This document shows positions 1,911-62,576 of a stretch of DNA of 64,000 bases, piece by piece. How positions within the stretch are numbered: the stretch's first letter is position 1; each line of letters opens with the position of its first letter. A model generated the notes under the pieces. The model had not been told where the DNA came from. It saw nothing but the letters and a program-made list of their open reading frames with translations, and did no database searches. Made by a program: the position numbers and the translations under genes. The stretch comes from Trichosphaerium sp. ATCC 40318 (Eukaryota > Protista > Tubulinea). The stretch covers positions 233 through 64,232 of the forward strand of contig JALMLS010000360.1 of the NCBI GenBank assembly GCA_038496445.1. Direction: 5' to 3'.

Positions 1911-4900
1911 ATGACAGAATCACAAAGTGACGCCAATACCAATATTGATGTTGTTGATGACTATGAAAAGGCAGCTTTAATTTATGCAGGTAACATGATA
2001 TGATGAGATACAACATGTACATACCTTACTCTACTATTTAGCATACAAAGGATACAATGAAGTTGTATCAATGTTAATTAATGCCAACGCCAATATTGAT
2101 GCTGTTGGTGAATATGGAAAGACAGCTTTAATGATTGCAGGTAACATGATATGATGAGATATAACATGTACATACCTTACTCTACTATTTAGCACAAAAA
2201 GGACACAATGAAGTTGTATCAACATTACTCAACGCCAATGCCAATATTCATGCTGTTGATAGAGATGGAAATACAGCTTTAATTTATGCAGGTAACATGA
2301 TATGATGAGATATAACATGTACATACCTTACTCTACTATTTAGCACAAGAAGGACACAATGAAGTTGTATCAACATTACTCAACGCCAATGCCAATATTG
2401 ATGTTGTTGATAAAAATGAAAATACAGCTTTAATTTATGCAGGTAACATGATATGATGAGATATAACATGTACATACCTTACTCTACTATTTAGCACAAG
2501 AAGAACACAATGAAGTTGTATCAACATTACTCAACGCCAATGCCAATATTGATGCTGTTGATAAATATGGAAATACAGCTTTAATGATTGCAGGTAACAT
2601 GATATGATGAGATACAACATGTACATACCTTACTCTACTATTTAGCACACAGCGGGTACAATGAAGTTGTATCAACATTACTCAACGCCAATGCCAATAT
2701 TGATGCTGTTGATAAATATGGAAATACAGCTTTAATTTATGCAGGTAACATGATATGATGAGATATAACATGTACATACCTTACTCTACTATTTAGCAAA
2801 AAAAGAACACAACAAAGTTGTATCAACATTACTCAACGCCAATGCCAATATTGATGTTGTTGATAAATATGGAAATACAGCTTTAATTTATGCAGGTAAC
2901 ATGATATGATGAGATATAACATGTACATACCTTACTCTACTATTTAGCAAAAAAAGAACACAATGAAGTTGTATCAACATTACTCAACGCCAATGCCAAT
3001 ATTGATGCTGGTGATAAAGATGGAAAGACAGCTTTAATTTATGCAGGTAACATGATATGATGAGATACAACATGTACATACCTCACTCTACTATTTAGCA
3101 CAAGAACGACACAATGAAGTTGTATCAATGTTAATTAATGCCAACACCAATATTGATGCTGTTGATAAATATGGAAAGACAGCTTTAATTTATGCAGGTA
3201 ACATGATATGATGAGATACAACATGTACATACCTTACTCTACTATTTAGCATACAAAGGATACAATGAAGTTGTATCAATGTTAATTAATGCCAACGCCA
3301 ATATTGATGCTGTTGATAAATATGGAAATACAGCTTTAATGATTGCAGGTAACATGATATGATGAGATATAACATGTACATACCTTACTCTACTATTTAG
3401 CACAAGAAGGACATAATGAAGTTGTATCAACATTACTCAATGTCAATGCCAATATTCATGCTGTTGATAAAGATGGAAACACAGTTTTACATTTTTCAGG
3501 TTACATCAAAAGAAATACTACAAGTTTAGCTTATGTTACTATTTAGCACAAAGAGGAAATAATGAAATTATACCAATATTACTTAAAGCACATTTAAATA
3601 AGAACGCTGGTGATGAAAATAGAAACAATGTTGATTTAGGTACTGTTGCAATTTCACACTTGTAACCCTATTTGTTTGAAACGAACAATAGTTAACAGTT
3701 GGGTTTTAGTTATATCACCAGATAAGAAAAAGTGGCAAGATTTTCTTTTATTGTTATTTAAACAAGTGATATCAAATGCTCCAGCATCTGTTGAAGCGTT
3801 TGTAACTTTTTTAAAATACTGTCCAAGTGGTAAACAATGCCATGCACTGTGGAAATCTTGTTCATCCTTTATGTCCTCCACAAACAGTGACAGATTGGAA
3901 ATGCAAATGACACAATACAACAAAGCATACTTCGAGCAGTGGAAACAAGATCTTACACATCCTAAAAAATGGCTTCGGTACTTGGTATGCTACTTTTGAA
4001 ATGCTTTACTTGTTTTAATTATTACAACCTTCAGCCAACGCGTTCTTATTTTAAACTGGCAATGGAAAAGGGCATTTGTTATTTAATTTGTTCTGTGTGC
4101 AATCCCAAAGTTGCTTTGTCTGCAGTACGAATCCACAAACCACATGTAAACTTTATAACTGTTTGCTTTTTACTAGAACTTCTGGAAACAAGATGGAGAA
4201 TTAATGCGAGGCATCTTGTTTGATATGCCCAATGATGCCTGGAGCAACACCGATCAAATTGACTACTTTGAAGATATCACTACAGGTATCAAGGTCACTG
4301 TTTTGCTGCAAAAACTAAAGTACCACAAAGGAATTAAGGCTGTAAACACGCGGGAGTTAAATCGGAGGTTGCATTTTGCAAATAATTGGGACAGATCTAA
4401 CAGCACGTGCGTTCAAACTTATTACCATTTAGGTGGTTTTTTCAGTTTATTTTAAAAAGGGGCATTGATTTAAAGGCGACTGACTACAGGACACTGAATC
4501 TGCTTGATACAACTGACAAAGTGGCTGTAAGAGAATTCAACATCCTCAAACAACAGATGTCCAAAATGCACGGCTATGACCAATACGATATTGTTGAAGC
4601 GACTCTTGTTTACAATGATATCTTGAATGACAACTTTGGACAATTCAACAACATACTACAACACAGACATCAGTACTCTATTATAATTACCCTGTTTTGA
4701 TGTGTCTAAGTATGTACTTGTAGAGGACTTCCCAACTTGTTTAAAAAACAAAATTGGAAAAATGGCATACATAAAAAGTACAAAGAGAGTGTTTACAAAC
4801 AACACAATTCCACACCAATGCAAAAATATTCAAGTACCAATAACGAGGACGCTTCAAAAGAAGAGGTAATGTTTGTTAAAAAAAGCTATTTGTACTAACC

Positions 4901-6276
4901 TACGTTTAGTCACCAGTGATATTGATGGCTCATGGTACAAGTGAAGAAGCAGCTTACAATATTGTAAAAGCTGGTTTTGGAACTGTGAGTGCTTTAGATG
5001 CTGGTTACTATGGTCAAGGGATATACTTCACAGTACGCGATAATAATGTAACACTATATTCATTTCTTTCACAACAGCGGAGTATAAAATATGCGTGTTC
5101 TTATGATAAGGGAGGAAAGAAAGAGAAAACACTTATTTTGAGTCTTGTCACTCCTGGCAATGTATATCCTGTAAGTATCAATTTTATTGTCGTATCTAAT
5201 TTGCAAAAAGGTACACCCAAAAGACAAGTTAAGAGGACAGCCAATAAAACCAGGCTACCAAAGTCATTTTGCATTGGTAGATAGCTTAGGTAGAGTTCTC
5301 AAAGAAAATAAACTTGCCAACGCGGTATACGATGAGCTTGTTGTTGCACAAGGTACAGGAGCAACTACCAAAAAATTGTATTAACTTGATTTTGCAATCA
5401 GATTCTCAAGCTGTTGCTCGTTACATCATCAAAGTGAAAGATAATCAAATCAAAAAACGAATGAAAACAAAAAAACCCAAGAAAGGTGGTAAAAAGACAA
5501 AGAAACAAAACAAAGAAGAAAATGAAGGTTCAGATGATGATCTCTCTGACTCTGATGATGATAATTTTATTTCTAACCGGTAAGACATCATCCTTTTATT
5601 TAACCTCATATTGTTGCACAGAAAACTATGGGCTGCCCATGTGGACTCAACTGATGACCAGCAATCAACTAGCAATGATGTATATCTCGACATAGAATTA
5701 CAAAAAGCAAACCAGGAGATGAACAAACTAAAGAAGAGCAATGCGAATATGAAGGAACTTCTTGAGAATTTACAGCAAACCAAAACAAACCAACAACATT
5801 ATAATGCAAAGTTAGAGCAAGACAAATCAATCAAGCAACGACGCATCATCAAGTTGACAGAAACCGTCAATAATCTAAAGCAAGACAATAAAGTCAAAAT
5901 AGCAGAAAACAATGCCAACCTAAAGCGAGACAATGTCAGCCTAACAGAAAGTGTCAATAACCTACAGCAAGACAACTCAACCAAGCAACAACACATCACC
6001 AACCTAACAGAAAGTGTCAACAACCTACAGCAAGACAATGTCAAGTTGATAGAAAGTGTTAATGACCTGAAGGAAGACAACGTCAAATTAACAGAAACCA
6101 ATGCCATCATTAAAGAAAGTGTCAACAACCTGAAGAAAGATAACGTCAACGTATCCAAAAGCAACGCCAACCTGGAGCAAGATAACGTCAACATAGAAAA
6201 AAGCTTAAATAGCCTACAAGAGAGAAACGCCATTCTACTTGCCAAAATAGCCCAACTTGAAAATACAAACAAGTAG
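1911..6276 (+). CDS. Ankyrin-repeat / PARP-type ADP-ribosyltransferase / coiled-coil protein (copy A), multi-exon, reading frame intact
   Basis: ATG at 1911 (MTESQSDANTNIDVVDDYEKAALIYA). Ten 99-nt ankyrin exons plus a capping exon, then a central helical region. PARP catalytic motifs: LMAHGTS, GYYGQGIYFT, IKYACSY, VYDELVV, ARYII. C-terminal coiled coil (ORF 5611-6276). I followed each GT-AG junction by hand and the frame stays open to TAG at 6276. Confidence 0.9.
1990..3499 (+). repeat. Tandem array of ten 151-bp units (52-nt intron + 99-nt ankyrin exon)
   Basis: Intron GTAACATGATATGATGAGATAYAACATGTACATACCTTACTCTACTATTTAG starts at 1990, 2141, 2292, 2443, 2594, 2745, 2896, 3047, 3198 and 3349. 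Exons run 2042-2140 through 3401-3499. Confidence 0.97.
5845..6210 (+). repeat. Imperfect intragenic repeats (LTESVNNLQQDN-like, 14/21-aa spacing) in the coiled-coil tail of copy A
   Basis: ACAGAAAGTGTCAA(T/C)AACCT...CAAGACAA recurs. Heptad-compatible spacing in ORF 5611-6276. Confidence 0.8.
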
Positions 6277-18369: not shown

Positions 18370-18940
18370 TAGAGATACCTTGTCCAACAACAACCTTGTC
18401 GTATACTGCATTGGTGACTTTATCTTCAGTGACAGCTCTACCCTTATGATCAATGTAATGACTTCGGTAGCCTTGTTTTATAGGCCTTCCTATTAAATCC
18501 TCCGTTGGTTTTACGTGTGTAATCATTAATACATAATACACAATTCTTGTTTGTGTACAGGGTATATGTTGCCAGGAGTAATGCCTCAAAATAACCGGTT
18601 TTTTCTTTTTGTCCTCTAGTATCGTATGCATTTTCGAGATCTTCTGATGGTCACTTTGTCATTTGTATCAAGGAGATTCAGTGTTCTGTTGTCCCTTTTT
18701 TGTAAAATAAATAAACTACAACCAATTGTTGCTTTGAACGCACGTAGATCTATTACTTGCTCAAACTACATGAGAAAAACGTCTTGGCTCCTTTTTTTGT
18801 ATGGTGAAAGTAACAACATTAATTTCCTTTCAACAGTGCTTTCAGGTAAAATTGCAATGGTGCCTGAAAAAGTGTTCTATCAACAGCATTGATATTGACA
18901 ATGGCATTGATTACATTGATATAATCTCATTGTGTAGAGA
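18370..18940 (-). pseudogene. Internally deleted ankyrin-PARP family relic (copy C)
   Basis: In order: a frameshifted ankyrin exon (CACAATGAGATTATATCAATG-TAATCAATGCC...GCTGTTGATAGA), RTLNLLDTNDKV, TPGNIYP, GRPIKQGYRSHY..DHKGR...NAVYDKVVVGQ. The HGT/GIYF exon is missing and the catalytic E is replaced by K. Confidence 0.85.
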
Positions 18941-23544: not shown

Positions 23545-24912
23545 ATGGGTGACGACGGCGACAAAGTTAAAAAGCTTACGAAGGAAATAGAGTCCCTCAA
23601 AAACCAGATAGAGAAAAACCGCACTGAAAAGAACGACACAGATCGTACGTTTTTTAAAATACCACAAACGCATTTTTGTGCAGTCTTTGCCTTTTACCCG
23701 TTTTTTAATACGTTTGGACCCAATGTTGCCTCTTTAAACTAACCCGACATAGTAAAGCAATATGTTGCCAATGAGAGCATCAACTTGCCTAGTGGGGACA
23801 AACTAAAAGCGCGCCGTACATTGAAGGGCCATCTTGCAAAGATTTACTCTATGCAGTGGTCTACCGATAATATTCATCTTGTTTCGGCTTCACAAGATGC
23901 CAAGCTTCTTGTTTGGGATGCGCTTACCACCAACAAACTCCACTGTATTCCTGTACACACCTCATGGATTATGACTTGCGCATACGCTCCTTCTGGCAGT
24001 TTTGTTGCCTGCGGTGGTTTAGATAACCTCTGCTCTATCTATAACCTCAGATCACGCGATATTCCTATTCGTGCCTGTCGTCAATTGTCCGCACACACTG
24101 GTTACCTCAGTTGCTGTCGATTCCTCGATGATAAACAAATCATTACAAGTTCTGGTGATGCTACTTGCATCTTGTGGGATATTGAAGCCGGCTCTAAGAT
24201 TAAGGAGTTCTCCGACCACTCTGGAGATGTTATGAGGTATGCGCGCTGCCATACACAATAATTTAACTCTGTTTTATTTTAAATCTTTTTTTGTGAACAA
24301 AACTGTTTTTATATGGGTATTTTACGGACTCACATAACCTTTAGCGTTTCTATTTCCCCTAATCAGAAATATTTCATTTCTGGTTCTATTGACGCCACAG
24401 CCAAACTTTGGGATTTACGTTCCGGCAAATGCACCCAAACATTCAAGGGACACGAGAGTGATATCAACACTGTCCAGTACGTTTTTTTTTCGTAAATTGC
24501 AAAAACGTTTTGGTTTAATAAATACCTAACTTTCTTTTTTTAGATACTTCCCAACCGGCTATACCTTTGCCACTGGATCTGATGACTCCACCTGCCGATT
24601 GTTCGATATCCGTGCTGACCGCGAGCTCATGACTTACTCACACGACAGCATTCTTTGCGGTATCACATCTATTGATTTCTCACTCTCCGGCCGTTACTTA
24701 TTTGCTGGTTACGATGACTTTAACTGCAACATGTGGGACACCCTCACAGGTGAGAGAGTACACACTCTTGAAGGTCACGATAACCGCGTTTCGTGCCTCG
24801 GTGTTTCTCCTGACGGTATGGCTCTCTGCACAGGTTCTTGGGATCATCTTCTCGTACGTTACGACTAAACATTTCAGTTACTAATTTTTTTCCGTAGCGA
24901 GTTTGGGCATAA
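23545..24912 (+). CDS. GNB: Heterotrimeric G-protein beta subunit (WD40)
   Basis: N-terminal coiled coil, [65 protein letters not shown]. Four coding introns. Confidence 0.97.
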
Positions 24913-37754: not shown

Positions 37755-39067
37755 TCTTGTTGATGCTATGACAATATGTAAGATGCTTTTTGCGTAAATC
37801 TAGCTAGATCCAAAGTTGGTGACTTAACTATCCAAATATGTTCATATTACATACGTATGTATACCTCTTAATACCACGAATTCATTGGGAAATGACCACT
37901 ATATGTTGTCATGATCCTTGAGTTTTTAGGCCATCTCCCACTAAACTTATGGATATGTCTAAAACGAGAGCATCTCAAAGGCTACGTGAGTGTTATTCTA
38001 GTGTTAAATCGAGTAGGAGTGATTGTAACTTTGTCTCTTACACGCAAGCACCCTGACACAACAGTTCCAGATATCACAGTACCTGAGATTTGCATTGTAA
38101 AGGATGATGGTTTGTTTACTTCATGCTCATATTCAGTCGACATAGATATGATGATATGCATCATAATAGTCTCAGAAATCCGCGGATATTGAGAAAGCTC
38201 AAACATTCTTTGAGCTGCAGAAACAACCAGTACAAACATTAAGCTTTAACAAGTGATACAAGCATTGGATGCATGTCCCTAATAGCAGTAGTCACCTATA
38301 CAAACTAAGTCAATAATGTAGTCCATTATCACAAAAACATACCTTGTCAACACGTGACAAAAACCATTTCGTAAAAGAAAGAAAACAAAACTGTTGTTGT
38401 ATAAATTGTTGGCATTTTATCTTATATGAGTAGATAGTGTTGAACGTACATGATAGAATAGTGGGTAGAGTAGGGCTGTGGCAACGACCAGAACTCGTCA
38501 ACATACTCCTATATTGGGATGATGCCTTTCTGTTCTTGCTGTGAACAATCTATGTTGTGATCTGATCTTGTAAAGCGGATACATAGTTCGCACAGCTATT
38601 CACTGTATCAGGTGAAGCTAAGGTTGTCATTGCACAGTACTGGCCGAACACTGAGAACAAAAAGGCCTCGTCCAGGTCAATTCCACTAGCTACTGTTGCC
38701 ATCCTAGTCAGTGTAAAACTTTCACTTATCACGTGATACAAATATATAAACCTAGCTGTACGTGGGTATGTGAGATTGTTGAATGTGAAACCAAACATTG
38801 ATATTAAACTTACAGTGTTACTTGAATCGCTTACGTAACTATTGAAAAATGGTTTCATTTGTTATAACCGACTCAATTGTTTAGTATAAAAGGACACAAT
38901 AAAATGTTTTCTATCTAAGATTATCGAAGTCAACGACTCAAACAAGTGAGCTGCTACAAATTTAACTATCACATAAGATTGTTGTATGTAAAACGAAACA
39001 TTTAGCAATTCCTACCACGAGCGTTTCTATACTGTTGTTTATTGTTCTGCTCAGTAACACGATTTAG

Positions 39068-42000
39068 TTAATTCTTCCCAGTTTCAAGACGAGCTATTTT
39101 ATCCAGTACTTCAGCAAGCCTTGCTTGTAAGTTATTGTTGGTTTCTTGTAACTCAGCAATGTATTTTTTCTGATTTGCAATACTATGGGATAAGTTTCTG
39201 TTGGCTTGCTCCAGATCCTCATTACTTGGTTTTTGTTCGGCATTGAGATTATTGTTTGACTCTTCTTCATCAGGCTCTACATGAGAAGCCCATAGTTTTC
39301 TTGTATTGCCAATTAGCAAAAAGAATAGAAGTGTAATTCTTACCGGCTACTAATGAAGTTGTCGTCATCAGAATTGTATACGTCATCTGAGTCATCTGAA
39401 TTATTACCAGACACAACCTGTTCATTTGGTTTATTTATGTTTATATTCTTCTTCATGGCTCTATCGCTTTTCTTTGGCTCGATGTCTTTCCTTTTCGGTA
39501 CCACTTTGATGATGTAACGAGCAATGGTTTGATTATCTGAACTCATCATAAGTAAGAACTAAATAAATACCATTTGTTTCTTGATTGTACCTTGTGCAAC
39601 AACAAGCTCATCGTACACTGCTGTTTTTAGTTTCCCTTCTTTCAGAGGTTTACCTGAGTGGTCTACCAACGCGTAATGGCTTTGGTATCCTGGCTTTATT
39701 GGGTTCCCTCTTAAGACGTCATTTGAATGGACCTTAAGATAAAAAAGTTAACGTGGCTATATATGTTGATTACTTACAGGATATGTATTGCCAGGCGTGA
39801 CAAAACTTAGGATAAGGGTATTTTCTCCTTTTCCTGAGGCATCATATGAACAAGCGTATTTGATACTCCTCTGATATTCAAAGAAAAATGTGAGCACGTG
39901 CATAATTTAAACGGTTTTGTTTAGCGTACAGTGAAGTAAATGCCTTGACCATAGTAACCAGCATCCAAAGAGCTCACAGTCCCAAAACCAGCTGCTACAA
40001 TACTGTACGCAGCTTCTTCACTAGCTCCATGTACCATCAATATCACTGGTAACTAAAAACAAGATTGTAAGCACGATTTGAGCAGGACTACTTACATCTA
40101 CTGCTGAAGCGTCATCAGCATCAGTTGATCCATTTTGTGGAGCGAGTGCCTCATACTTTTGGTAAACAGCATCTCTGTAATCCTTATTAATATTATCTTC
40201 CTTCCATTCCTGCTTTTTAAACAAGTTTGGTAGATCCCTTTAAATAGAGGTTAGAATTACAAGGGCAATCAATACCATAATTTGTTCTTTTGGATATCGT
40301 ACTGATGTCTGTATTTCAATAGTTTGTTGGCTCTTCCAAAGGTTTCAGTCAAGATATCGTTACAAACTAGAGTTGCTTCTACAAGATTGTATTTGTTGAA
40401 ACCATGCATTGTTGACAATTCTTGTTTTAGGATGTTTAATTCTCTTACAGCTACTTTATCATTTGTATCAAGAAGGTTCAGTGTTCTGTAATGAGTCGCA
40501 TTTGATACAAACCCACTTAAAAAAAAATTACATAGTTAAAAATAAATACAACAATATTGAACGCACGTGACTTTAGATCTGTCCCAATTGTATGAGTAAT
40601 TCAGTCGTGGATTTATATCCCATCTGCGTTTGCTTTTTAATCCTTACAGTTTGTTGTAAACAAAACTAGGTACAAAACACTAACTTCCTACCTGTAGTGC
40701 ATTTGGTAGCTTCTAAATCGTCATATTGCTCTGAATTATCACCCCACATGTCTTTAGGAAGGTCGTAAAGAATACCTTTCATTAATTCTCCGTCCCCTTT
40801 CCAAAAATCCTGAGGAGAAAAAAAAAACAAGTGTTAGGAAGATATTGTTGAATGATTTTCTGGTTTGTGTGTTATTATCAGGTAACGTACTTGCGAAAAT
40901 GCAAGCTTGGGATCACATATTGTACAAATTAAATGACAAATACCTTTTACCATTGCCAGTTCAAAATAAGAACGTGTTGGCTGGGCATGTATTAGTAGGT
41001 ACTGTATATTCTTAGCATACCAATTGTTGCAGCCATGCATTAATATCTGCCGCTGTTAACTCTCCATCTCTGCTTGATTTATGTTTGCTTTTGAAGTATG
41101 AACAAGAGAGCCATAGATCACGTGATTGTTGAAAATATGGTAGGAGTTTTAAAACATTAATGAACAACTCAACAGACCCAGATTCTTGTAAGTGAATCAT
41201 GTTGATTAACAGTACTCGAAAAAAGTCTTGCCAAAGTTTTGTAGACGGCAAAATGCCGCCAGTTTCTTTTAGTAAAGTGAAGAATAATGAAGTCATTATT
41301 CCTGAATCTAAACACAAAATAAGTCCTCGGTCAATTTACAAACAAGTGACAAACACACCATGATTAAGAGTTTCTTCATCAAAGCTGATAGGTGCAATAT
41401 TCGCCATTGCTTTGAGTAGCATCACAACTGCATTCAAGCCCGCATGCGCTGTAGAAAGAAGTGAGTTACAGTCTATATTAATATCTTGTTACATCACCTG
41501 CATAAAGTAGAGGTGTCTCTCCTTTATTATTAGCTATGTCAATAGTGGCGTTTGCTTTTATTAACATAGACACAACTTTATTGTTATATTCTTTAACTAC
41601 AGCAATGTTAGTTCTTGTAGACTATTTACGACTGTCACATTACCTGCATGAAATAAAGCTGTATTTCCGTCATTATCAGCTGCGTCAACGTTTGCATTTC
41701 CTGCGATCAAGATTGACATCACCTCACAACTACTCCTAAGACTTAAACGTGCTAAAAATAAAGTGAGTTTCAAAAAAAAGTTTTGTCTATCGTGTGATAC
41801 AAAGGTACCTGCATAGATCAAAGGAGTCTCTCCCTCGTTGTTGGTGGCATCAATATTGGCATTTGCTTTTACCAGCATTGATAAAACTTTAAGGTGAGAA
41901 TAGAGGACTAAAGGAAAATATCAGTATCAGCCGCTAGTTTTTATTCTGTTGTGCCACCTGCTGTATGTAAAGCTGTATTTCCTTCTTTATCCTTTGCGTC

Positions 42001-43953
42001 GATATTTGCATTCGCTTGAATTAACATTGAAACCCTTTCTTTATATCCCTGTTGTACTACAGGCAACATAAGTTAACCGAAATTAATTGGATAAGAACTT
42101 GACATGTTACCTGATAGAATTAAGGGCGTATTTCCATATGAATCAACAACTTCAGTATTTGCTTTTGCTGCTAGCAACATTGAAATGTCAAAAACATCTT
42201 CACTATACTGCACTTAAAGGAAACGTGAGTTAGAATTTATGTGGGTTAAGCACAGTTACCTGCAAAATATAAAGCTGTTTCACCTTGTTTTGTGGCAGCG
42301 TTTACGTTTGCTTTTGCTTCAATTAACATTGCCACAGCTTCTGAGTTTTTATTACTTGCTTTATTGTAGGGTGAGTGACAGCTGTTGTACAGACTGTTGT
42401 GGTATTACCTGCGTAAAGTAAAGCTGTGTTTCCGTATTTATCAACTCCAATTTCGGTGTTTGCGCCTGCTCCGATTAGCATTGAAATGACTTTGTTGTTA
42501 CTACATTCCACTATAGGTTGTCAATCAATTGTTTTGAATGGTATTTGAAGTGACGTTACCTGCATAAAGTAAAGCTGTCTTGCCATCTTTATCAACAACA
42601 TCAACATTCGCTTTTACATTTAATAACAGTGAACAAATTTCAGTAAACTTATCACCGTTGTTCTCAGCTAAAGTAAAAAATGAGAACGTCATTTAGAATG
42701 TAGAATTTGAGGAATATTTGAGGAATATTTGAGGAATGTACGTGTACGGAATTACTACTCTACGCCCAACCACAAAGTATAAAAAGGTAAGGTTTTTTCT
42801 CGCTATACGCTGTAATGCTAGTTTTGTTGGTGGCTGTTGGTACTGTCGCGTGAGTGCAAAAGAAGATTTTTACTAATTAAATGCACTGAAGGATGCGAAA
42901 ATACTATAGGTCTTTGTGTGACTTCATAAGAGCAAGCATTTTTTTTTACAAACAAATAAAATAAGTGTAAAATACTTTTTGTAGCACGTTACCTGCATAA
43001 AGTAAAGCTGTTTTGCCATATTTTTTATCAGCAACTTCTATATTTGCGTTTACTTTTATTAACACGGAAACAATACTGGTGTTACCGTATTGAGCTAAAA
43101 GAAAGTGTGACTTGTTTAAGTTAAGAAAAACTTGTGACTTTCACCTGCACAAAGTAAAGCTGTCTCTCCTCGTTTGTTAGTAGCATCAACATTGGCCTTT
43201 GCTGCAATCAACATTGACACAATTTCTACTGTACATGGTCTGCATCCGTACACTAAGGCAATTGAGCAAGCTGCAGTTATGACACAACAATATTACCTGT
43301 ATTAAGTAAAACTGAGTTTTCGTCTTTATCAACAGCATTGACGTCAGCATCGGCTTTGATTAGTAAGGATACAGTTTCTTTTTGTTCTAAATGGCGATGT
43401 GAGTTGCACATTGTATCTGTGATATTATTACCTGCATACATCAAAGCTGTCCATCCATCTTCATCAACAGCATTAACATTTGCATTGGCTTTGATTAGTA
43501 TTGATACAACTTCATTGTGTCCATTTTGTGCTAATCAATGATGAGTTAACGTTGTATCTCACCTGATATGTTACCCGCCCACATCAAAGGTGTCAATTTG
43601 CGGTTATCAACAACATCAATATTTGCATTTGCGTTTAGTAATGCAGACACAATTAAACTGTATCCTTCTTTGGCTAACAAAATACAAAAAAATAAGTTTA
43701 CTTATTCGCAATTACGTCACGTGTGACGCTGATATTACCTGCACAATGTAAAGCTGTTTCTCCAGTTTTAATATCAAGAGTATCAATATCACTATTCGAA
43801 TCCGCCTTTAGTAAAGTTGACGAAACCATTTTAATATCCCCAGTACGCACTACAGTCAAGCCATGAGAAAGAATTAATGTATTTCCTGCTGTTACCTGCG
43901 TGGAGTAAATCTGTCGCATTATTTGGGTTTTCTTTGCCTGGTGTTTCCGCCAT
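39068..43953 (-). CDS. Ankyrin-repeat / PARP-type ADP-ribosyltransferase / short coiled-coil protein (copy B)
   Basis: ATG 43953 (MAETPGKENPNNATDLLHA). About 14 single-repeat ankyrin exons with phase-1 introns. Central region homologous to copy A. LMVHGAS, GYYGQGIYFT, IKYACSY, VYDELVV. Intron positions match copy A. Not every ankyrin junction was checked. Confidence 0.88.
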
Positions 43954-44738: not shown

Positions 44739-45329
44739 CTACTTAAAGGGCAATTTATTCATTTCAAAGACCTTTACACACTTTCCATTTCGATAGAACG
44801 AATGAATATCTATAACTCCATCAGGATACCACCTTCTATAATCTCCATCTGGCTCGCCATTGACACATTCGAAAAACTCATTAACACTACCATTCGAATG
44901 CCATCTCTTAAACTCGCCTTCTCGTAAACCATTCTTGTAAGTACATTGACAAGACATGTTACCATTACGATGCCAAGAAGTATATTCTCCATCCAATTTC
45001 CCATTTTTATAGGAACAACAAGTTTTCTTGGCAATAGCATGTTCTTTATTCCATAGTTTACCGTCTCTATGCGTAACATACCATGTCTCATGCCTACCAT
45101 GTAATACACCATTTTGAAAGCACGTGCGTGACTTTAAAACTCGATAATACGAGAATTTAAGGAAAACACCATTCTTTTCTAGTATATAGTCATATCTTGA
45201 TGTTGTTGCTGTTTGGTGGTTTAATAACGGCCATTTTAGGTATACTTCCGTGTCTAGTGAGATTATCATGTGCTGAAGCTCTAAAGGTATTGCCAAAATG
45301 ATACTTTCACGTGAGTTCTTTAGTCCCAT
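44739..45329 (-). CDS. Intronless F-box-like + MORN-variant (MORN_2/YwqK-like) repeat protein
   Basis: N-terminal ILAIPLELQHMII (F-box-like LPxE motif). 24-aa repeats YKNGKLDGEYTSWHRNG / YKNGLREGEFKRWHSNG. Confidence 0.8.
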   Translation of the reverse strand: MGLKNSRESIILAIPLELQHMIISLDTEVYLKWPLLNHQTATTSRYDYILEKNGVFLKFSYYRVLKSRTCFQNGVLHGRHETWYVTHRDGKLWNKEHAIAKKTCCSYKNGKLDGEYTSWHRNGNMSCQCTYKNGLREGEFKRWHSNGSVNEFFECVNGEPDGDYRRWYPDGVIDIHSFYRNGKCVKVFEMNKLPFK

Positions 45330-54100: not shown

Positions 54101-57100
54101 GTGTTAAGCTCAATCCAAAATTGAAAAATATAAAGATTGTTTTAACTCCGAATCCAAAGGATGTACCTTCTATGCAACCAGAGCATGTAGATGTTATAGC
54201 AGCAAAACCTATTTCTAGAGATAAATTGAGCTCTTTGATTGGTAAAAAGAAGAATAGCGCTCTAATCGATGGTACGTTTCTTATTCTTATTTTTTTCCGA
54301 GAAAATTTATTTATTCGTTTTCAACTGGTATTTCGCAGTTTTTATGACAATTCATCGTATCATATCTCCGGCTATATTAGCGTCATGAGGAAAAAATAAC
54401 ATAAGATGAATCGTTATGTTCAAAAGCGAATGAAGGGTTTTTGTTCACCTGTTATTGAACTTTTGCAGTTTTTCATTGCAAGCAATTATTTATTGTGCTA
54501 CTGTTTTTTTATGGTATTGATTTAATTCATTTGCTTAGGCTCTATCAAATCACAAATGTCTTTATCAGTACTTGTTGCTGAAGATAGTCCAACAAATATT
54601 ATTGGTGCGTAACTTTGTAACAACAGTGAAAGCATTTTGGTTTTCTCTTTTTTTTCTTTTGGCTTTAAAGTTATGTACTTACAAGCAATTAGTACTCACA
54701 AAGACGTTGACCAATATGGGTCATCAGTACGTTTTATAATAATATATCAAAAGTAACATACTCTGTAGATCCCATTGTGTGAAGGACGGTAAAGAAGTTC
54801 TTGATGAATATAAAAAAAATCACTCAAAATATCATATTGTTCTTATGGATTGCCTCATGCCTGTGATGGATGGATGGGAAGCTACTCAAAAGATAAGAGA
54901 ATGGGAGAAAAGTCAAGGATTAGAACATAAGCCAATAGTCGCATTATCAGCTGCTTCTGATCCTGAAGACATTGAAAGAGCTAATGAAGTTGGTATGGAC
55001 CATTTTCTTATAAAGCCAGCAAAAAAACTTGAGCTGGAGAACTTATTCGCAACTGTTATTGGAAACTATAAAGAAAAGAAAGATGCAGATGTATCTGTAA
55101 AAGAAGGCCCTCTATGTAAAGTTCTATGGGCTGATTCTAATACTGTCAGGTAGCGATCTTTTATCATAAGTTGTTTTATGAAAAATAGTTCCCTTTGTTC
55201 CTTTCAAACGTCTTTACTTCTCTTATCTGATATCAAATATTTGCGTGCTAAATACTTCTTTTTAATAGCTTTAAATTGGTGTCAATGATGTTACCTAACT
55301 TTGAGTTTGATTATGCAGAATCTGGAACAGAAGTAAGTTGTTTACAGATATCTTACAGTGCAGTTTCTAACCTTTTATAGTTGGTGAATACAGTAAAAGC
55401 ACGATACAACCATTATGATGTCATTGTTATCGTAAGAACTCTCCTATGTTTAATTGTGTTGCCAAAAACTCTAAAACCAGTGACATGGCTTGTCATGCAT
55501 CCTTTCGTTTTTTTTTCAAAATGGAAAATTACGCCTTTCAGTATTGGTTTCTCGTTCATATTCCATCCCGCTTTGCTATGCTTGTTGACCTCAATATGGC
55601 CCCTTCTAACATTTTTTAAAGGCAGAACATATTGCTACTATGACAGGACGTCGATGTCTTGTAGACATTCGTCGCTATGAAAAAGATGAAGGCATGCAAT
55701 TCCAAAAGCCTGTCATTGGCTTTGCTACATCGACACACAATGCTGAAATGTGGTACCGATCTGGATGTAAATGTGTCATGGTTAAACCTATTGATTTGCC
55801 TCAACTAAAGACACACCTCGAGAGTCATATCCACGTATGTCGGACTTGTTTCCCGTCATCAAACCCAAACTTAAGAAAAGTATTTTTTGGTCTTAGCGTT
55901 TCTCTTCTTTCACGTTTCTTATGATGTTATTTGCTCATATTTTATACTAGGGAGGCGCTAAACTACCTACCGATAATGTCGTTGTGAGGAGAGTTTATGG
56001 TTTGAAGGTATTAGTGTTAAGCAATGATGCTGAGTTGGCGAACAAGTTATATCAGGATGTTGTTGATAGAGGACATGAATGTATTATTAGCCGTATAAGA
56101 AAACCAAAAGAGCTCACATACGTCAGTAAAGGGTCTTGTCATAGTGATAGAGACTTAGTACTTTATCATATAAACTTGGACATGAAAGATATTGAGCTTG
56201 CTTCACCAACTGTACGCCAAAACCCAAGTTTCTCTTTTTTCTTCATTAGAAATTCCACGTGTTTAAATTTTTTTTTCGCGCGTAGAGTCCTTGACTGTCT
56301 TTGTATTCTATAACTCATACTGTGTCTCTTTAGGCAAGACCTATTATAGCTCTATCTTCGAATCCAAGCAAGGAAGAAGAGGAAGCTGCCATTAAACTTG
56401 GGTTTGCTGAGTATGCTGCTATGCCTATTACAAACCAAAAGCTTGAGACTATTCTTCATGAAGTTGAACGTAAACGTGTGCATTCTGTTAATGAGACGCA
56501 TTTTAAACAACCAAGGAACCTATATAAACTTGAGCGTGAGTTCGAGAGTCTAAGACAACTGTTCAGGTACAATATTATCAGTTTTTTACTGTGCTCTTTT
56601 TTTTTTTTGCCATGCCTCACACCTGTGTTTAGTAAATTCATTCCAATGGAGTATCAGCAACTTATTGCTCCAAGAGGTCTTGATTGTGTTAAGCTAGGAG
56701 ATTATAGGTTCGTTTTAGTTCAAAAAATGAATGTTGAACCGTTTGTTTCTTCTTTTTTTTCTCTTTTTTTTTCGAGTTTGTGGAGCTCTACCTATCGCCT
56801 AACGTATAGTTTTGCAATGCAATACAGCAGAAATAACTTGATTTTGATCAGAGATAGGGTTTATACTAATTGTTCGGTTAGGAGACATCGTATTACTGTA
56901 TTGTTCAGTGATATTCGAGATTTTACAACTATGACAGAAGATATGGATCCTAAAGATGTTATTGAATGGATTAATAATTACAACGCCTTTGCTATAGCAC
57001 CTATTTATCAGTATGGTGGATTTATAGATAAATTCATTGGAGACTCAATAATGGGTATGTACCAACAAAGTCAAACAGTGTCAACAACAAAAAGTTGGAG

Positions 57101-58108
57101 CATAATTTTTTTTTTTCCTTTGCATGCTTACTAACACTCTGCTCTTAGGTGTGTTTGCTAGTGATACAAGAACACAGCAAGAACGGTACAGTGACATTTT
57201 TTATTGTTTTGTTTGTTCAAGTGCATTGGCTGAGACTGTTTAGCGCCTTGTCTGCTGTTAGATGTGCCGTCAAAATGATTGAAAACCTGAATAAAATGTC
57301 TGCATCTTTACCTACTCTTAAAAGCGAGACTGGTATTGGTGTAAACACCGGAGATGTTATTATTGGTCTTATCGGTACTGATACACGTATGGAGACTACT
57401 GCACTTGGAGATGCTGTAAATCTTGCATCGCGAACTGAGTCGCTTTGCAAAAAGTAAGTTATCTTCATTTTTTTTTTGGTTTGTAAAAGGCTTACAGCTC
57501 CTCATAACCTGGTTTGTAATTTTCTTGTAGATACAAAGCAAGGATTCTCATTACAGAGAGTACAAAGGCTGATATGGGTGGAAACGCAAATGACTTTGAT
57601 CTACGTCTTGTAGACTATGTTTTTGTAAAAGGTAAAAAAAAGCCTTGTAAGATATACGAAGTAATGGATGCTGATCCGTACGTAACCACCCCCAAGCTTA
57701 CTCAAAATAATTCGAAAGCTATAAATACATGTACTAAAACCTACACAGACCTGAAATTAAAGAAAAGAAGCTAGCTATACTCACCAATTTTAACCAAGGT
57801 GTCGAAAGTTATAAAAACTCACAGTTGGCGAAAGCCAAATCTTGGTTTGAAGTACGTCAATCATACAATGACTCCAGCAAATGCCTTTTTTGAATGTCAT
57901 ATCTTTGTACTTAAAAACAACCACGTGTTTTTCACGTGTTTTTTAATGTCTTGTCGCCAATGCTAATTTTTTTCTTTTTTTTTTTTTGTAGAAATGTCTT
58001 GAAGTCTACCCTGAAGATGAGCCTACAAAAATACTTCTTGAACGTGTTGTTAAAGGTCTAGAAGATCCAACTAATTTCAAATCTGTTACAGCTTTGAATT
58101 CGAAATAA
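51141..58108 (+). CDS. Membrane hybrid histidine-kinase-like / multi-receiver / class III adenylyl cyclase (AcrA/ACB-like); start tentative
   Basis: N-terminal TM exons. HATPase ILSQLIDNALTFT..VRDTGTGI..IFHQFF..GVGLGLATC. Canonical receiver VLVAEDS..VLMDCLMPVMDGWEA..FLIKP plus three degenerate receivers. Cyclase VLFSDIRDFT, DKFIGDSIM, GIGVNTG, TALGDAVNLASRTE, VKGK. The K/T specificity pair indicates ATP. Confidence 0.88.
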
Positions 58109-58351: not shown

Positions 58352-59251
58352 TTATTTCTCACAAACAACTTTCAAAGGTGACTTTAACAGTCGGTTACCA
58401 TCAATCCACATACACTCTTCCTTAAAAAATCCATTCCTATGCCATAGTCTAGTCTTGCCATGCCGTTTACCATCAGCCCACATGCTGCGTTCCTTAAGTT
58501 GTCCGTTATAATACCATTTCATTCTTTTACCAAACAGTTTACCATCAACTAAAAAGCATTGTTTCAAAAGTTGTCCACTCTCAAGCCAATATTTGAGTTT
58601 GCCATGTCGTTTACCATCAATCCACATACACTGCTCCTTAAGTTGTCCATTTTCATGCCATGATTTACACTCACCATGTTTGTTATCATCAATCCACATA
58701 CACTGGTCCTTAAGTTGTCCGCTTGCATACCATGTCTTACTCTCACCATGTAGTTTATTATCAATCCACATGCCCTGCTCTTCAAGTTGACCATTTTTAT
58801 ACCATCCCCTAGATTCACCATGCTGTTTATCATTAGAAAATGTCCACTGTTCCTTAAGTTGTCCGCTTGCATACCATGTCTTACTCTCACCATGTAGTTT
58901 ATTATCAATCCACATGCCCTGCTCTTCAAGTTGCCCATTTTTATACCATCCCCTAGATTCACCATGCTGTTTATCATTAGAAAATGTCCACTGTTCCTTA
59001 AGTTGTCCGTTCTCATACCATCCCTTAGCTTCTCCATGCTTTTTACCATCAACCCACATCCACTGTTGCTTAATTGTTCCACTTTTATACCACTGTATCC
59101 ATGGTCCTTTCTTTTTTAATGCCTCATTAAAATGTGTATTGATTGCTGCTCTTTTTGATAGTGTATGAAACTTTGTAAATGCTTCCATGTTGAAAGTACA
59201 AATATACTGTTGAAGTTCACGTGGGATATCTAATAAACTCACTGAGTCCAA
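58352..59251 (-). CDS. Intronless F-box-like + MORN-variant (MORN_2/YwqK-like) repeat protein, about 10 repeats
   Basis: LLDIPRELQQYI motif, then 24-aa GQLKEQxMWIDGKxHGExKxWYxN repeats. The ORF starts at TTG; the first ATG lies after the F-box-like motif. Confidence 0.78.
   Translation of the reverse strand: MDSVSLLDIPRELQQYICTFNMEAFTKFHTLSKRAAINTHFNEALKKKGPWIQWYKSGTIKQQWMWVDGKKHGEAKGWYENGQLKEQWTFSNDKQHGESRGWYKNGQLEEQGMWIDNKLHGESKTWYASGQLKEQWTFSNDKQHGESRGWYKNGQLEEQGMWIDNKLHGESKTWYASGQLKDQCMWIDDNKHGECKSWHENGQLKEQCMWIDGKRHGKLKYWLESGQLLKQCFLVDGKLFGKRMKWYYNGQLKERSMWADGKRHGKTRLWHRNGFFKEECMWIDGNRLLKSPLKVVCEK
58707..58994. repeat. Near-perfect 144-bp tandem duplication (2 x two MORN-variant repeats)
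   Basis: 58707-58850 vs 58851-58994 differ at one base that I could see (TTGACC/TTGCCC). A 48-aa block is duplicated in frame. Confidence 0.92.
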
Positions 59252-61111: not shown

Positions 61112-62576
61112 ATGGATGATACACGCACGTGCGAGAACATAAAACAGAAACCTGTAAAAAATAAGTACAGTACTACTTTTAAATTATTCTGGTACGTCAT
61201 TATATCGCTTTCATACGCGTAAACTAATCTATACGAACAGCCTCTTGGTTGTTTTAAGTCTTTTATACCTTATCATATCACTTCCTTCAACAGCAAGATC
61301 ATTACGCACATACAAATTCTACGAGGCTGAAAAACAACCTATTGACGTCAAAAAACCCCCAACGCCTTCTATAGACTATTGCCCACCTTTCCTAAATGAC
61401 TCTACTCTAAAAAGGGCTAAACTTGTATCTCAGGAACCAGATTTAAGTATTGATATTACTGACGCTTTAAACACGTGGGTAGAAAAATATCATTTGCCTG
61501 CCATTAAGAATCCTTCATTACCTTCATCAAAATTCTTATTGTATAGTAATACACATGCTGGATTTGGTAATAACTTCGAGGCTTTTGTAAGCGCGTTTAC
61601 CGTTGCTGTTCTTACACAGCGTGCTTTTATTATCAAACCTTATGATCAAGCACAGTTTTTTATTGAAGTATGTACTTATATTCAAGGTGAGTTTTTCTCG
61701 TCTAACCTCGAAGGTGTTGATTATGATCGAGATTATAAAGCTACAGCTGGTTTTCTTAATAACACATATGTTACATATCTGCCTTTCACGCAGATAGATT
61801 GGCACTGGGTATACTACTGTAACAACGCTGAAGTTGATTTGCTTTCAAAAAAAGTGATTGGAATGTCAGGAAATCAGTATATTCTACAGGGCATTCTTGC
61901 ACAGCCAACAATGAGAAAAATATTCTATGACACGTTTGGAACGCATAAAGATGTGTTCCATCAAATAACAAAAAAGATGTTGGTACCTGTACCTTGGATA
62001 CAAAAAGACATTGAAGAATTCAAACAAGAATATTTTGAGAAAAATTATGTTATAGGGATTCATTTCAGAACAAAAGAACGTGAGATACCAGAAGGATATG
62101 AAAAAAGATTTCATAAAGTTGCAAGAGATATTACAGAAAAGATAGAGGATTCTCTTCCTAAAGGAATGAGAGTAAAGTGGTTTTTAGCTTCAGACTCAAA
62201 TAAACTAAAACAAAAATGGGAAGAAAGATATCCTGATCATGCCATTACCTTTAGAAAGGAATACAAACAAAAACATGGAGGCACGTGTTTGCTATGTACA
62301 TGGCGCGTTCTAACCTTTTTATAAGGTTGTGCTGGAGCCATTGTAGATCTTTACTTACTATCTAGTTCAGATACACTTTTACTAACTCTTTGGAGCACAT
62401 TTGGTTATGCAGCACAAGGGATGGCCGGTAAAATACCTTTTGTTATGTGGGATAAATGTCATAGATGGTATAGTGCTTATCCTTGTTACCATGAATGTTT
62501 TAATGGATACGACCATGCTGATGGACCTTGCAAAGAGAGATATAATGTCAACGAAATGTGTTTACCTTGTAGATAA
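61112..62576 (+). CDS. Type II membrane fucosyltransferase (GT37/NodZ-like, GT-B fold)
   Basis: Short N-tail + TM, HAGFGNNF..FVSAF..AVLTQRAF, VIGIHFRT, WFLASDS, AIVDLYLLSSSD.LLLT.WSTFGYAA. Introns at 61192-61240 and probably 62281-62325. Confidence 0.85.

Follow-up and report, generated by a model that had tools for sequence, protein, structure and literature searches.

Fungal NLRs (NACHT/NB-ARC proteins, with the Podospora het-e/het-d/nwd family) carry ANK, TPR or WD repeats of high internal conservation, which are shuffled and contain positively selected sites on their concave face (Dyrka et al. 2014, PMC4986451); repeats are counted there as internally conserved when they share at least 85% amino-acid identity over at least 100 residues (PMC4986451). 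In the brown alga Ectocarpus, the ROCO-LRR (72 nt) and NB-ARC-TPR (126 nt) genes encode one repeat per frame-neutral exon of fixed length, these exons being duplicated and shuffled with variable residues on the binding surface, and the products have been proposed to be fast-evolving receptors (Zambounis et al. 2012, PMC3341825; PMC11378527). Copies of exons that are inactivated or inverted lie in the introns of these genes, and short introns of nearly identical sequence are not mentioned in the accessible part of that account (PMC3341825). Among the PARPs, ankyrin repeats have been gained independently at least twice, with clade 1A ankyrin-PARPs in Dictyostelium and ciliates (Citarelli et al. 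2010, PMC2964712), and vertebrate PARPs engaged in host-virus conflict evolve fast (Daugherty et al. 2014, PMC4038475). The present study concerns a gene, here called gene 1, in which ten ankyrin exons with near-invariant introns precede a PARP catalytic domain. It lies at the start of a 64,000-nt stretch from the protist Trichosphaerium sp. ATCC 40318 (GCA_038496445.1, contig JALMLS010000360.1, positions 233-64,232 of the forward strand); this whole stretch is referred to as the window, and all positions below are those of the window. Our results indicate that the ankyrin array marks a fast-evolving recognition module, which does not in itself prove a programmed generator of diversity.

With Tandem Repeats Finder, one array was obtained (1930-3506; period 151, 10.4 copies, 91% matches, no indels, score 2536). 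The array resolves into ten units, each consisting of an intron followed by an ankyrin exon of 33 codons (Table 1). The splice sites are identical and all array junctions are in phase 1, so that every 99-nt exon is frame-neutral. Single array exons pass the gathering score of Pfam PF00023 (21.6 and 23.5 bits, cut-off 21.1), and an array exon also passes that of PF13637 (24.5 bits, cut-off 22.7); by the criterion of the Pfam profiles, the array exons are ankyrin repeats. When at most one mismatch is allowed, the 52-nt array intron occurs exactly 10 times in the 64-kb window and never outside the array, with 0 occurrences expected from dinucleotide shuffles. A preliminary description of the window had proposed ten exon-per-repeat ankyrin units of 151 bp with near-invariant 52-nt introns, and the repeat search, the splitting of the units at GT-AG borders and the count of intron matches all bear this out. 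The peptide variants that it listed at the exon start (YKGY, QKGH, QEGH, QEEH, HSGY, KKEH, QERH), the beta-turn (GEYGK, DRDGN, DKNEN, DKYGN, DKDGK) and the exon end (MI, IY, HF) were likewise all found.

The two parts of the unit differ greatly in diversity. Variation among the ten intron copies is restricted to 2 of 52 positions, namely position 22, with four C and six T, and position 38, where one copy deviates, compared with 36 of 99 positions in the exons (Fisher p = 3e-6). Six introns are mutually identical and three others are identical to each other; the exons differ in every pair, by 3-22 nt. Nucleotide identity between units is 87.5% for exons and 98.6% for introns, and the alignment of the units that the preliminary description had suggested as a check gives a pairwise diversity of 0.014 for introns versus 0.125 for exons. 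This contrast is not a simple excess of nonsynonymous over synonymous change. In Nei-Gojobori counts over all unit pairs, the proportions of synonymous (pS) and nonsynonymous (pN) differences are 0.114 and 0.129, which gives an overall ratio of nonsynonymous to synonymous divergence (dN/dS) of ~1.15, and the synonymous sites are ~8 times more diverged than the introns. Segregating sites show the same, with ~7 of 22 at synonymous positions versus 2 of 52 in the intron (p = 0.002), and the difference persists (p = 0.04) without an 18-nt exon block that occurs in two forms, MLI and TLL, differing at six positions. As synonymous sites also lie far above the intron divergence, the invariance of the introns is not readable as a low neutral rate combined with a high amino-acid rate, and the introns are unusable as a plain neutral rate showing amino-acid change to be accelerated tenfold. 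Apart from those in the edge unit, nearly all synonymous differences belong to multi-nucleotide clusters that adjoin replacements. Several variant 11-mers (YKG, SMLI, NIDVVD, VDKDG, KTAL) are found at the homologous place in the repeats of two paralogs described below, gene 2 and transcript L001, although, given 20 or more paralogous exons, variants of one to three nucleotides are expected to be shared fairly often by chance.

The amino-acid variation is concentrated on a subset of codons. We applied to the array the positions of the repeat that are randomised in DARPins, namely 2, 3, 5, 13, 14 and 33, which we take as canonical ankyrin numbering and not as a model of this protein; the numbering reportedly derives from Binz et al. 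2003. Amino-acid diversity is 0.50 at these six positions versus 0.20 elsewhere (permutation p = 0.0026), and five of the six are polymorphic in the array, position 33 hardly varying. The corresponding pN is 0.24 for the six codons and 0.10 for the other 27, with an overall pS of 0.11. Polymorphic codons outside the DARPin set, about a third of the total, are 9, 10, 15, 16, 22, 24, 31 and 32. By our assignment, five of the 13 non-singleton polymorphic codons (31, 32, 2, 3, 5) presumably lie in the hairpin or loop, and a further six (9, 10, 13-16) in the inner helix or the turn that follows it; the other two (22, 24) would belong to the outer helix. The scaffold residues T6, L8, A12, N17, V19, V20, S21, L23, N25, N27, N29 and I30 are fixed in all ten units. 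The preliminary description had equated the variable codons with the DARPin contact positions, and had taken the exon variation to be mostly non-synonymous. The first of these statements stands as an enrichment, other codons being variable too; the second applies clearly only to the six binding codons, at which the ratio exceeds 1, and not to the exons as a whole.

The array repeats are recombinant mosaics. All four gametes are present at 59 of the 120 informative site pairs, and the minimum number of recombination events (Rm) is at least 5 within 151 bp, a mosaicism that was predicted by the earlier suggestion that concerted evolution reshuffles the repeats. The most diverged parts are the edges, i.e. 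units 1, 9 and 10 together with the flanking exons 0 and 11, as expected if unequal exchange homogenises the interior of the array. There is no effect of adjacency among the ten units, the number of differences being about equal for adjacent (11.1) and non-adjacent (12.7) units. The C variant at intron position 22 (units 1, 5, 8 and 9) always precedes exons with Tyr at codon 5 or with the MLI block, which indicates that the intron type at this position is linked to the 5' part of the next exon. At the variable exon sites the consensus base is C in 10 cases, A in 11, G in 7 and T in 8, where the exons overall are composed of C 17, A 39, G 16 and T 27; the variants comprise 23 transitions and 16 transversions. 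Templated hypermutation of the diversity-generating retroelement type was considered as a source of the variation and rejected, as the variation has no adenine bias.

Gene 1 is intact, extending over 1911-6276 (+) with 22 exons and 21 introns (all GT-AG, 40-70 nt), and its frame is open throughout for 1100 amino acids. The exon borders in the linker and PARP region were set using P0001, the protein of a paralog transcript, as a guide. The last 61 nt of exon 0, which runs into the array, differ from the array consensus at 8 sites, and the start MTE.QS is common to gene 1 and P0035, another paralog transcript protein. Between the array and the catalytic domain lies a linker of ~200 residues, which is helical in an AlphaFold2 model of low confidence (predicted local distance difference test, pLDDT, 35-55). 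No significant Pfam match was obtained for the linker from the gene 1 pieces or from full-length P0001, and residues 1-230 of P0001 have no match in the ESM Atlas; a protein search with the linker exon returned only the paralog P0001 and one unrelated repeat protein.

Several lines of evidence point to a PARP-type effector behind the array. The profile of the family matches PARP12, PARP10, PARP15, ZAP and PARP4 chains in the PDB (E = 2e-8 to 7e-4), while a single-sequence search of PDB sequences with P0001 residues 180-440, mostly the PARP domain, gave no match. Modelled with AlphaFold2, P0001 matches structures of tankyrase and PARP12 (E ~4e-9, template modelling score 0.6-0.72) in a fold search that cannot separate the PARP clades. 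P0001 passes the threshold of PF00644 with 30.9 bits, and it shares 88, 87 and 68% identity with gene 1 over three core exons; the 41-residue gene 1 exon 4910-5032 on its own reaches 18.5 bits (E = 0.0015), below the cut-off of 26.7, being a fragment. In the alignment with PARP12, the HGT motif of that protein is matched by His712 (AHGTS) and its G.G.YF motif by Tyr743 (GIYFT). The LVV strand, which the profile pairs with the FVIF strand of PARP12, follows immediately on Glu818, and we take this residue to be the equivalent of the PARP1 catalytic Glu. Gene 1 thus carries a PARP catalytic domain with H-Y-E at the triad positions, in line with the preliminary description, in which the array feeds an ADP-ribosyltransferase; the product is a PARP-type ADP-ribosyltransferase, the enzymatic activity of which is presumed. 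Compared with the paralog L001, omega is 0.28 in the PARP domain and 0.44 in the linker. Purifying selection thus acts on the effector half, consistent with a functional enzyme whose targeting arm changes fast.

The remainder of the protein is formed by a C-terminal tail, the last exon of which found no match in a protein search. Its coiled coil has 14-residue repeats and only weak coiled-coil Pfam matches, and Tandem Repeats Finder reports a period-42 repeat at 6005-6097. The segment 5996-6097 (+) of this tail is built of 42-nt (14-residue) repeats of the type LTESVNNLQQDN. No SAM, WGR, PRD, NACHT or NB-ARC domain was matched by Pfam in the gene 1 exon pieces or in P0001, nor were the NOD domains in P0003. 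Two familiar protein classes were considered and set aside. Gene 1 is not a tankyrase (PARP clade 4), as there is no SAM domain in the linker and the profile ranks PARP12, PARP10 and PARP15 first, with no tankyrase chain among its 18 matches; nor is it an NLR/STAND receptor, as neither NACHT nor NB-ARC is found in gene 1, P0001 or P0003.

A second, older member of the family in the window, gene 2, has 16 one-repeat ankyrin exons followed by a linker, a PARP domain and a coiled coil as in gene 1. Its ankyrin introns interrupt the repeat at the same phase-1 position as those of the array, inside the Ala-Ala of the inner helix, but are unrelated to each other and measure 38-57 nt, with one of 325 nt. 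The gene 2 ankyrin exons are 64-85% identical to the array consensus. The fourth exon is the closest (85%), and the introns beside it match the array intron at 35-36 of 52 positions, which is at the upper edge of the shuffled controls. The one-repeat-per-exon design shared by the two genes indicates that this design is ancestral in the family and that the array of gene 1 arose by recent amplification of one unit; over the longer term, the introns of the PARP-ankyrin family diverge faster than the exons, as is usual. The 325-nt intron of gene 2 (42668-42992, -), the others being ~45 nt long, includes an 11-bp sequence repeated exactly three times in tandem (42705-42737) and may represent an insertion.

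Transcripts of the family were found as contigs L001, L002 and L003 in JGI sample 3300016894, of which one protein is also tagged MMETSP. L002 is the transcript of gene 2, with 19 mismatches in ~1350 nt and an alignment that breaks exactly at the predicted introns; gene 2 is therefore expressed and spliced. By these transcripts, the gene family belongs to a marine microbial eukaryote in culture, or to a very close relative of such an organism. L001 and L003 represent two further paralogs, in which the ankyrin exons are contiguous, and the ankyrin part of L001, used as a protein query, matched generic ankyrin proteins as well as one more paralog, P0035. An intron containing a run of N is retained at 700-804 of L001, between the last ankyrin-like exon and the linker exon, and splits the open frame; L001 is a partly spliced or scaffolded transcript. 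A third family member is represented in the window by an isolated fragment found by tblastn (Table 1), most likely either what remains of a gene or a strongly diverged third copy.

Elsewhere in the window, two open reading frames are rich in MORN_2 repeats, 58352-59251 (-; Pfam E = 4e-39) and 44742-45329 (-; E = 4e-11). The former coincides with a 72/144/216-bp tandem array at 58568-59092 and is a second internally repetitive gene in the window. An exon for a G-protein beta subunit WD40 propeller lies at 23785-24258 (+; PF25391, E = 5e-74). Weak matches were obtained to a NodZ-type fucosyltransferase (61245-62321, +; E = 7e-6) and to an adenylate/guanylate cyclase catalytic domain (56421-57131, +; E = 2e-4).

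Table 1. Coordinates of gene 1, its ankyrin array and its relatives within the window.
Feature	Position	Strand	Remarks
Exon 0	1911..1989	+	Start codon, six residues MTESQS, truncated and diverged first ankyrin half-repeat running into the array
Ten 151-bp units	1990-3499	+	Unit = 52-nt GT-AG phase-1 intron, then 99-nt ankyrin exon
Array intron starts	1990, 2141, 2292, 2443, 2594, 2745, 2896, 3047, 3198, 3349	+	Each followed by a 99-nt exon (2042-2140 ... 3401-3499)
Intron 10, 47 nt	3500..3546	+	GT-AG; diverged relative of the array intron at the 3' edge of the array, 35/52 consensus matches
Exon 11, degenerate last ankyrin-like repeat (C-terminal cap)	3547..3639	+	32/93 sites differ from the array consensus
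Linker and N-terminal part of PARP domain	3710..4672	+	Exons 3710-3984, 4035-4124, 4177-4406, 4460-4672
PARP catalytic core	4724..5352	+	Exons 4724-4865, 4910-5032, 5078-5170, 5211-5352
Putative triad codons	His712 4931-4933, Tyr743 5024-5026, Glu818 5334-5336	+	From alignment to PARP12 motifs and strand
C-terminal tail	5402..6276	+	Lysine-rich, then acidic (exon 5402-5579); coiled coil of ~215 amino acids to the stop (exon 5622-6276)
Third family member, fragment	18380..18629	-	Last two PARP-domain exons only; tblastn, 51-68% identity to gene 1 and P0001
Paralog gene 2	39066..43953	-	16 one-repeat ankyrin exons, then linker, PARP domain and coiled coil

We propose the following course of events. 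An ancestral ankyrin domain would already have had one exon per repeat, and a single exon-plus-intron unit would have been amplified by unequal crossing-over. The array would be young, and its copies would continue to exchange sequence through unequal crossing-over and conversion. The introns would be neutral passengers, kept near-identical by concerted evolution; as the array intron has no significant fold, no Rfam match and no other copy in the window, and as its relatives have diverged, its uniformity is attributable to recent descent and homogenisation. In the exons, homogenisation would be opposed by selection for varied binding surfaces, the differences lying mostly in beta-hairpin, inner-helix and helix-turn residues of the putative ligand-binding face, and closely linked synonymous sites would be carried along. 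We consider it probable that the exons escape homogenisation in this way, through selection for differing binding surfaces with hitch-hiking of linked synonymous sites. What is shown is the structure of the gene with its domains, the unequal diversity of introns and exons, the mosaicism, the enrichment at binding positions and the purifying selection on the effector half; selection as the cause, and any role in defence, are inferred, and the sensor function and NAD+ consumption put forward in the preliminary description are conjectural. Short patches from diverged paralogous ankyrin exons, which are homologous within exons only, may add to the exon differences. As an outcome, the arm that recognises targets, and brings an ADP-ribosylating domain to them, would be diversified heritably, at the level of the germline. 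A bolder version of this proposal, which we regard as quite unlikely, is a heritable cassette system common to the whole family, in which the identical introns would serve as recombination joints and ankyrin half-repeats would be exchanged in frame within and between loci. Such a system would supply a protist with rapidly renewable binding arms that direct ADP-ribosylation at parasites or viruses, and would constitute a class of innate-immune receptor-effector without a NOD.

A number of observations weigh against selection as the cause of the exon differences. The overall dN/dS of ~1.15 is not clearly above 1, and as the data consist of one array of ten units related by recombination, codon-model tests are weak and the selection statistics are indicative. 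A synonymous diversity equal to the nonsynonymous diversity would require hitch-hiking, old block alleles (MLI/TLL, with six differences in 18 nt) or import from paralogs as candidate explanations, and if a 52-nt intron is to be kept uniform although hypervariable codons lie within 3-10 nt of either end, the exchange tracts must be very short or selection strong. Furthermore, neither a search with an exact 42-mer present in six units nor a protein-guided scan with the linker exon recovered a transcript or relative of gene 1 from the metagenome contigs.

Several of these observations favour an account without any selection for diversity, in which the array is a recently duplicated arm on which constraint has been relaxed, its exons take short ectopic conversion patches from the diverged ankyrin exons of paralogs, and its introns exchange only with their identical sisters. 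Apart from the ratio of ~1.15, with synonymous sites as diverse as nonsynonymous ones, this account draws on the clustering of nearly all synonymous changes beside replacements or in the edge unit, on the recurrence of the variant 11-mers in gene 2 or L001 repeats, and on the failure to find a gene 1 transcript in a transcriptome that holds three paralogs. It does not, however, lead one to expect that diversity is concentrated on the binding-face positions while the structural scaffold is fixed in ten units, nor that the frame is intact across 22 exons, and with so many paralogous exons some sharing of small variants is expected by chance. We regard it as the main alternative, yet rather unlikely, although selection and the neutral import of patches are not mutually exclusive. 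A different possibility is a programmed repertoire, in which splicing or somatic recombination would use the identical introns and the frame-neutral exons to yield many arms from one gene. The ten exons, all of 99 nt, phase 1-1 and with identical splice sites, would permit this, any subset of them being in frame, but the paralog transcripts L001 and L003 contain their ankyrin exons contiguously. In addition, in genomes with short introns the two ends of an intron are recognised as a pair (intron definition), a mode that makes exon skipping less likely, and all 21 introns of gene 1 are 40-70 nt long. Such a repertoire is very unlikely in our view, and the diversity of the arm is, on balance, neither somatic nor splicing-based.

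The uniformity of the intron might alternatively reflect a function, as a splicing control element, a small RNA or a recombination signal, with the intron under purifying selection and the exons drifting. That 50 of 52 positions are invariant, even though hypervariable codons flank the intron so closely, is consistent with this, but the array intron folds no better than its shuffles (z = -0.49), matches no Rfam family at E <= 1 and has no copy outside the array in the 64-kb window. The homologous introns of gene 2 have diverged in sequence and length, which argues against a functional array intron and for recent homogenisation, and we consider a functional intron most improbable. Equally hard to credit is that the pattern stems from the number or order of units having been misassembled, or from a mobile 'introner' that spread, in a recent burst, through an older array without introns. 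Repeats of 151 bp with identical 52-nt cores are indeed difficult for short-read assembly; nevertheless, no exon sequence recurs among the units and the frame is open after splicing. As to the introner, the array intron is found nowhere else in the window, and all 16 repeats of gene 2 are interrupted at this phase-1 position, in one case by an intron that resembles the array intron, which indicates that the position of the intron is ancestral and not newly inserted.

If selection maintains the differences between the exons, the array would represent the third independent case of repeat-based receptor diversification by concerted evolution, after the fungal NLR repeats and the brown-algal LRR/TPR exons, and the first such case with an intron inside the repeated unit and with a PARP enzyme as output. 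The introns would then provide a built-in neutral yardstick beside each exon, against which homogenisation and diversifying selection would be directly measurable. If the differences are neutral, the locus would be a clean natural example of homology-dependent exchange decoupling the evolution of introns and exons within 150 bp. The locus is also likely to be a further, independent case of ankyrin repeats having been fused to a PARP domain.

The preliminary description knew of no described system that is comparable, which is too strong given the fungal NLR ankyrin repeats (PMC4986451) and the Ectocarpus LRR/TPR exons (PMC3341825). With the fungal NLRs, gene 1 shares the evolutionary regime and the joining of a repeat arm to an effector domain, and its repeats show the fungal type of exchange between repeats (59 of 120 pairs, Rm at least 5) and of binding-face variation (p = 0.0026). 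The mean pairwise amino-acid identity of its repeats is, however, ~75%, below the 85% of the fungal criterion (PMC4986451). The fungal repeats also lack an intron per repeat and stand C-terminal to a NOD, whereas gene 1 has no NOD and a C-terminal PARP effector. The likeness to the Ectocarpus genes lies in one repeat per frame-neutral exon, with ten 99-nt phase 1-1 exons in gene 1 and 16 one-repeat exons in gene 2. The repeats are ankyrin and the partner is a PARP in gene 1, in contrast to LRR or TPR repeats with ROC-COR or NB-ARC partners in Ectocarpus, and the 52-nt array introns carry no exon remnants, nor are there opposite-strand ankyrin matches within the gene, unlike what is described for the Ectocarpus introns.

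Among the PARPs, the tankyrases (PARP5a/b) and the clade 1A ankyrin-PARPs have ankyrin repeats N-terminal to an H-Y-E PARP domain, as does gene 1. The catalytic fold of the family, in the model of P0001, matches tankyrase, while the sequence profile ranks PARP12, PARP10, PARP15 and ZAP first; moreover, no SAM, WGR or PRD domain was detected in the gene 1 linker, in contrast to the tankyrases and clade 1A ankyrin-PARPs, and the gene 1 repeats form a young, near-identical array where the tankyrases have conserved ARC units. Gene 1 may therefore represent a further independent gain of ankyrin repeats by a PARP. The vertebrate PARPs in host-virus conflict resemble gene 1 in that their non-catalytic, target-recognising parts evolve fast, and the catalytic domain of gene 1 resembles in sequence the group of PARP12, ZAP, PARP10 and PARP15; they differ in carrying macro, zinc-finger or WWE domains and no ankyrin arrays, and the evidence for them is based on orthologues. 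The array also resembles the DARPins in its fixed scaffold and varied surface positions, the DARPins being engineered. What is new at this locus is the combination, in a protist, of a repeat unit made of an exon plus an intron, with near-invariant introns, ankyrin repeats and a PARP output.

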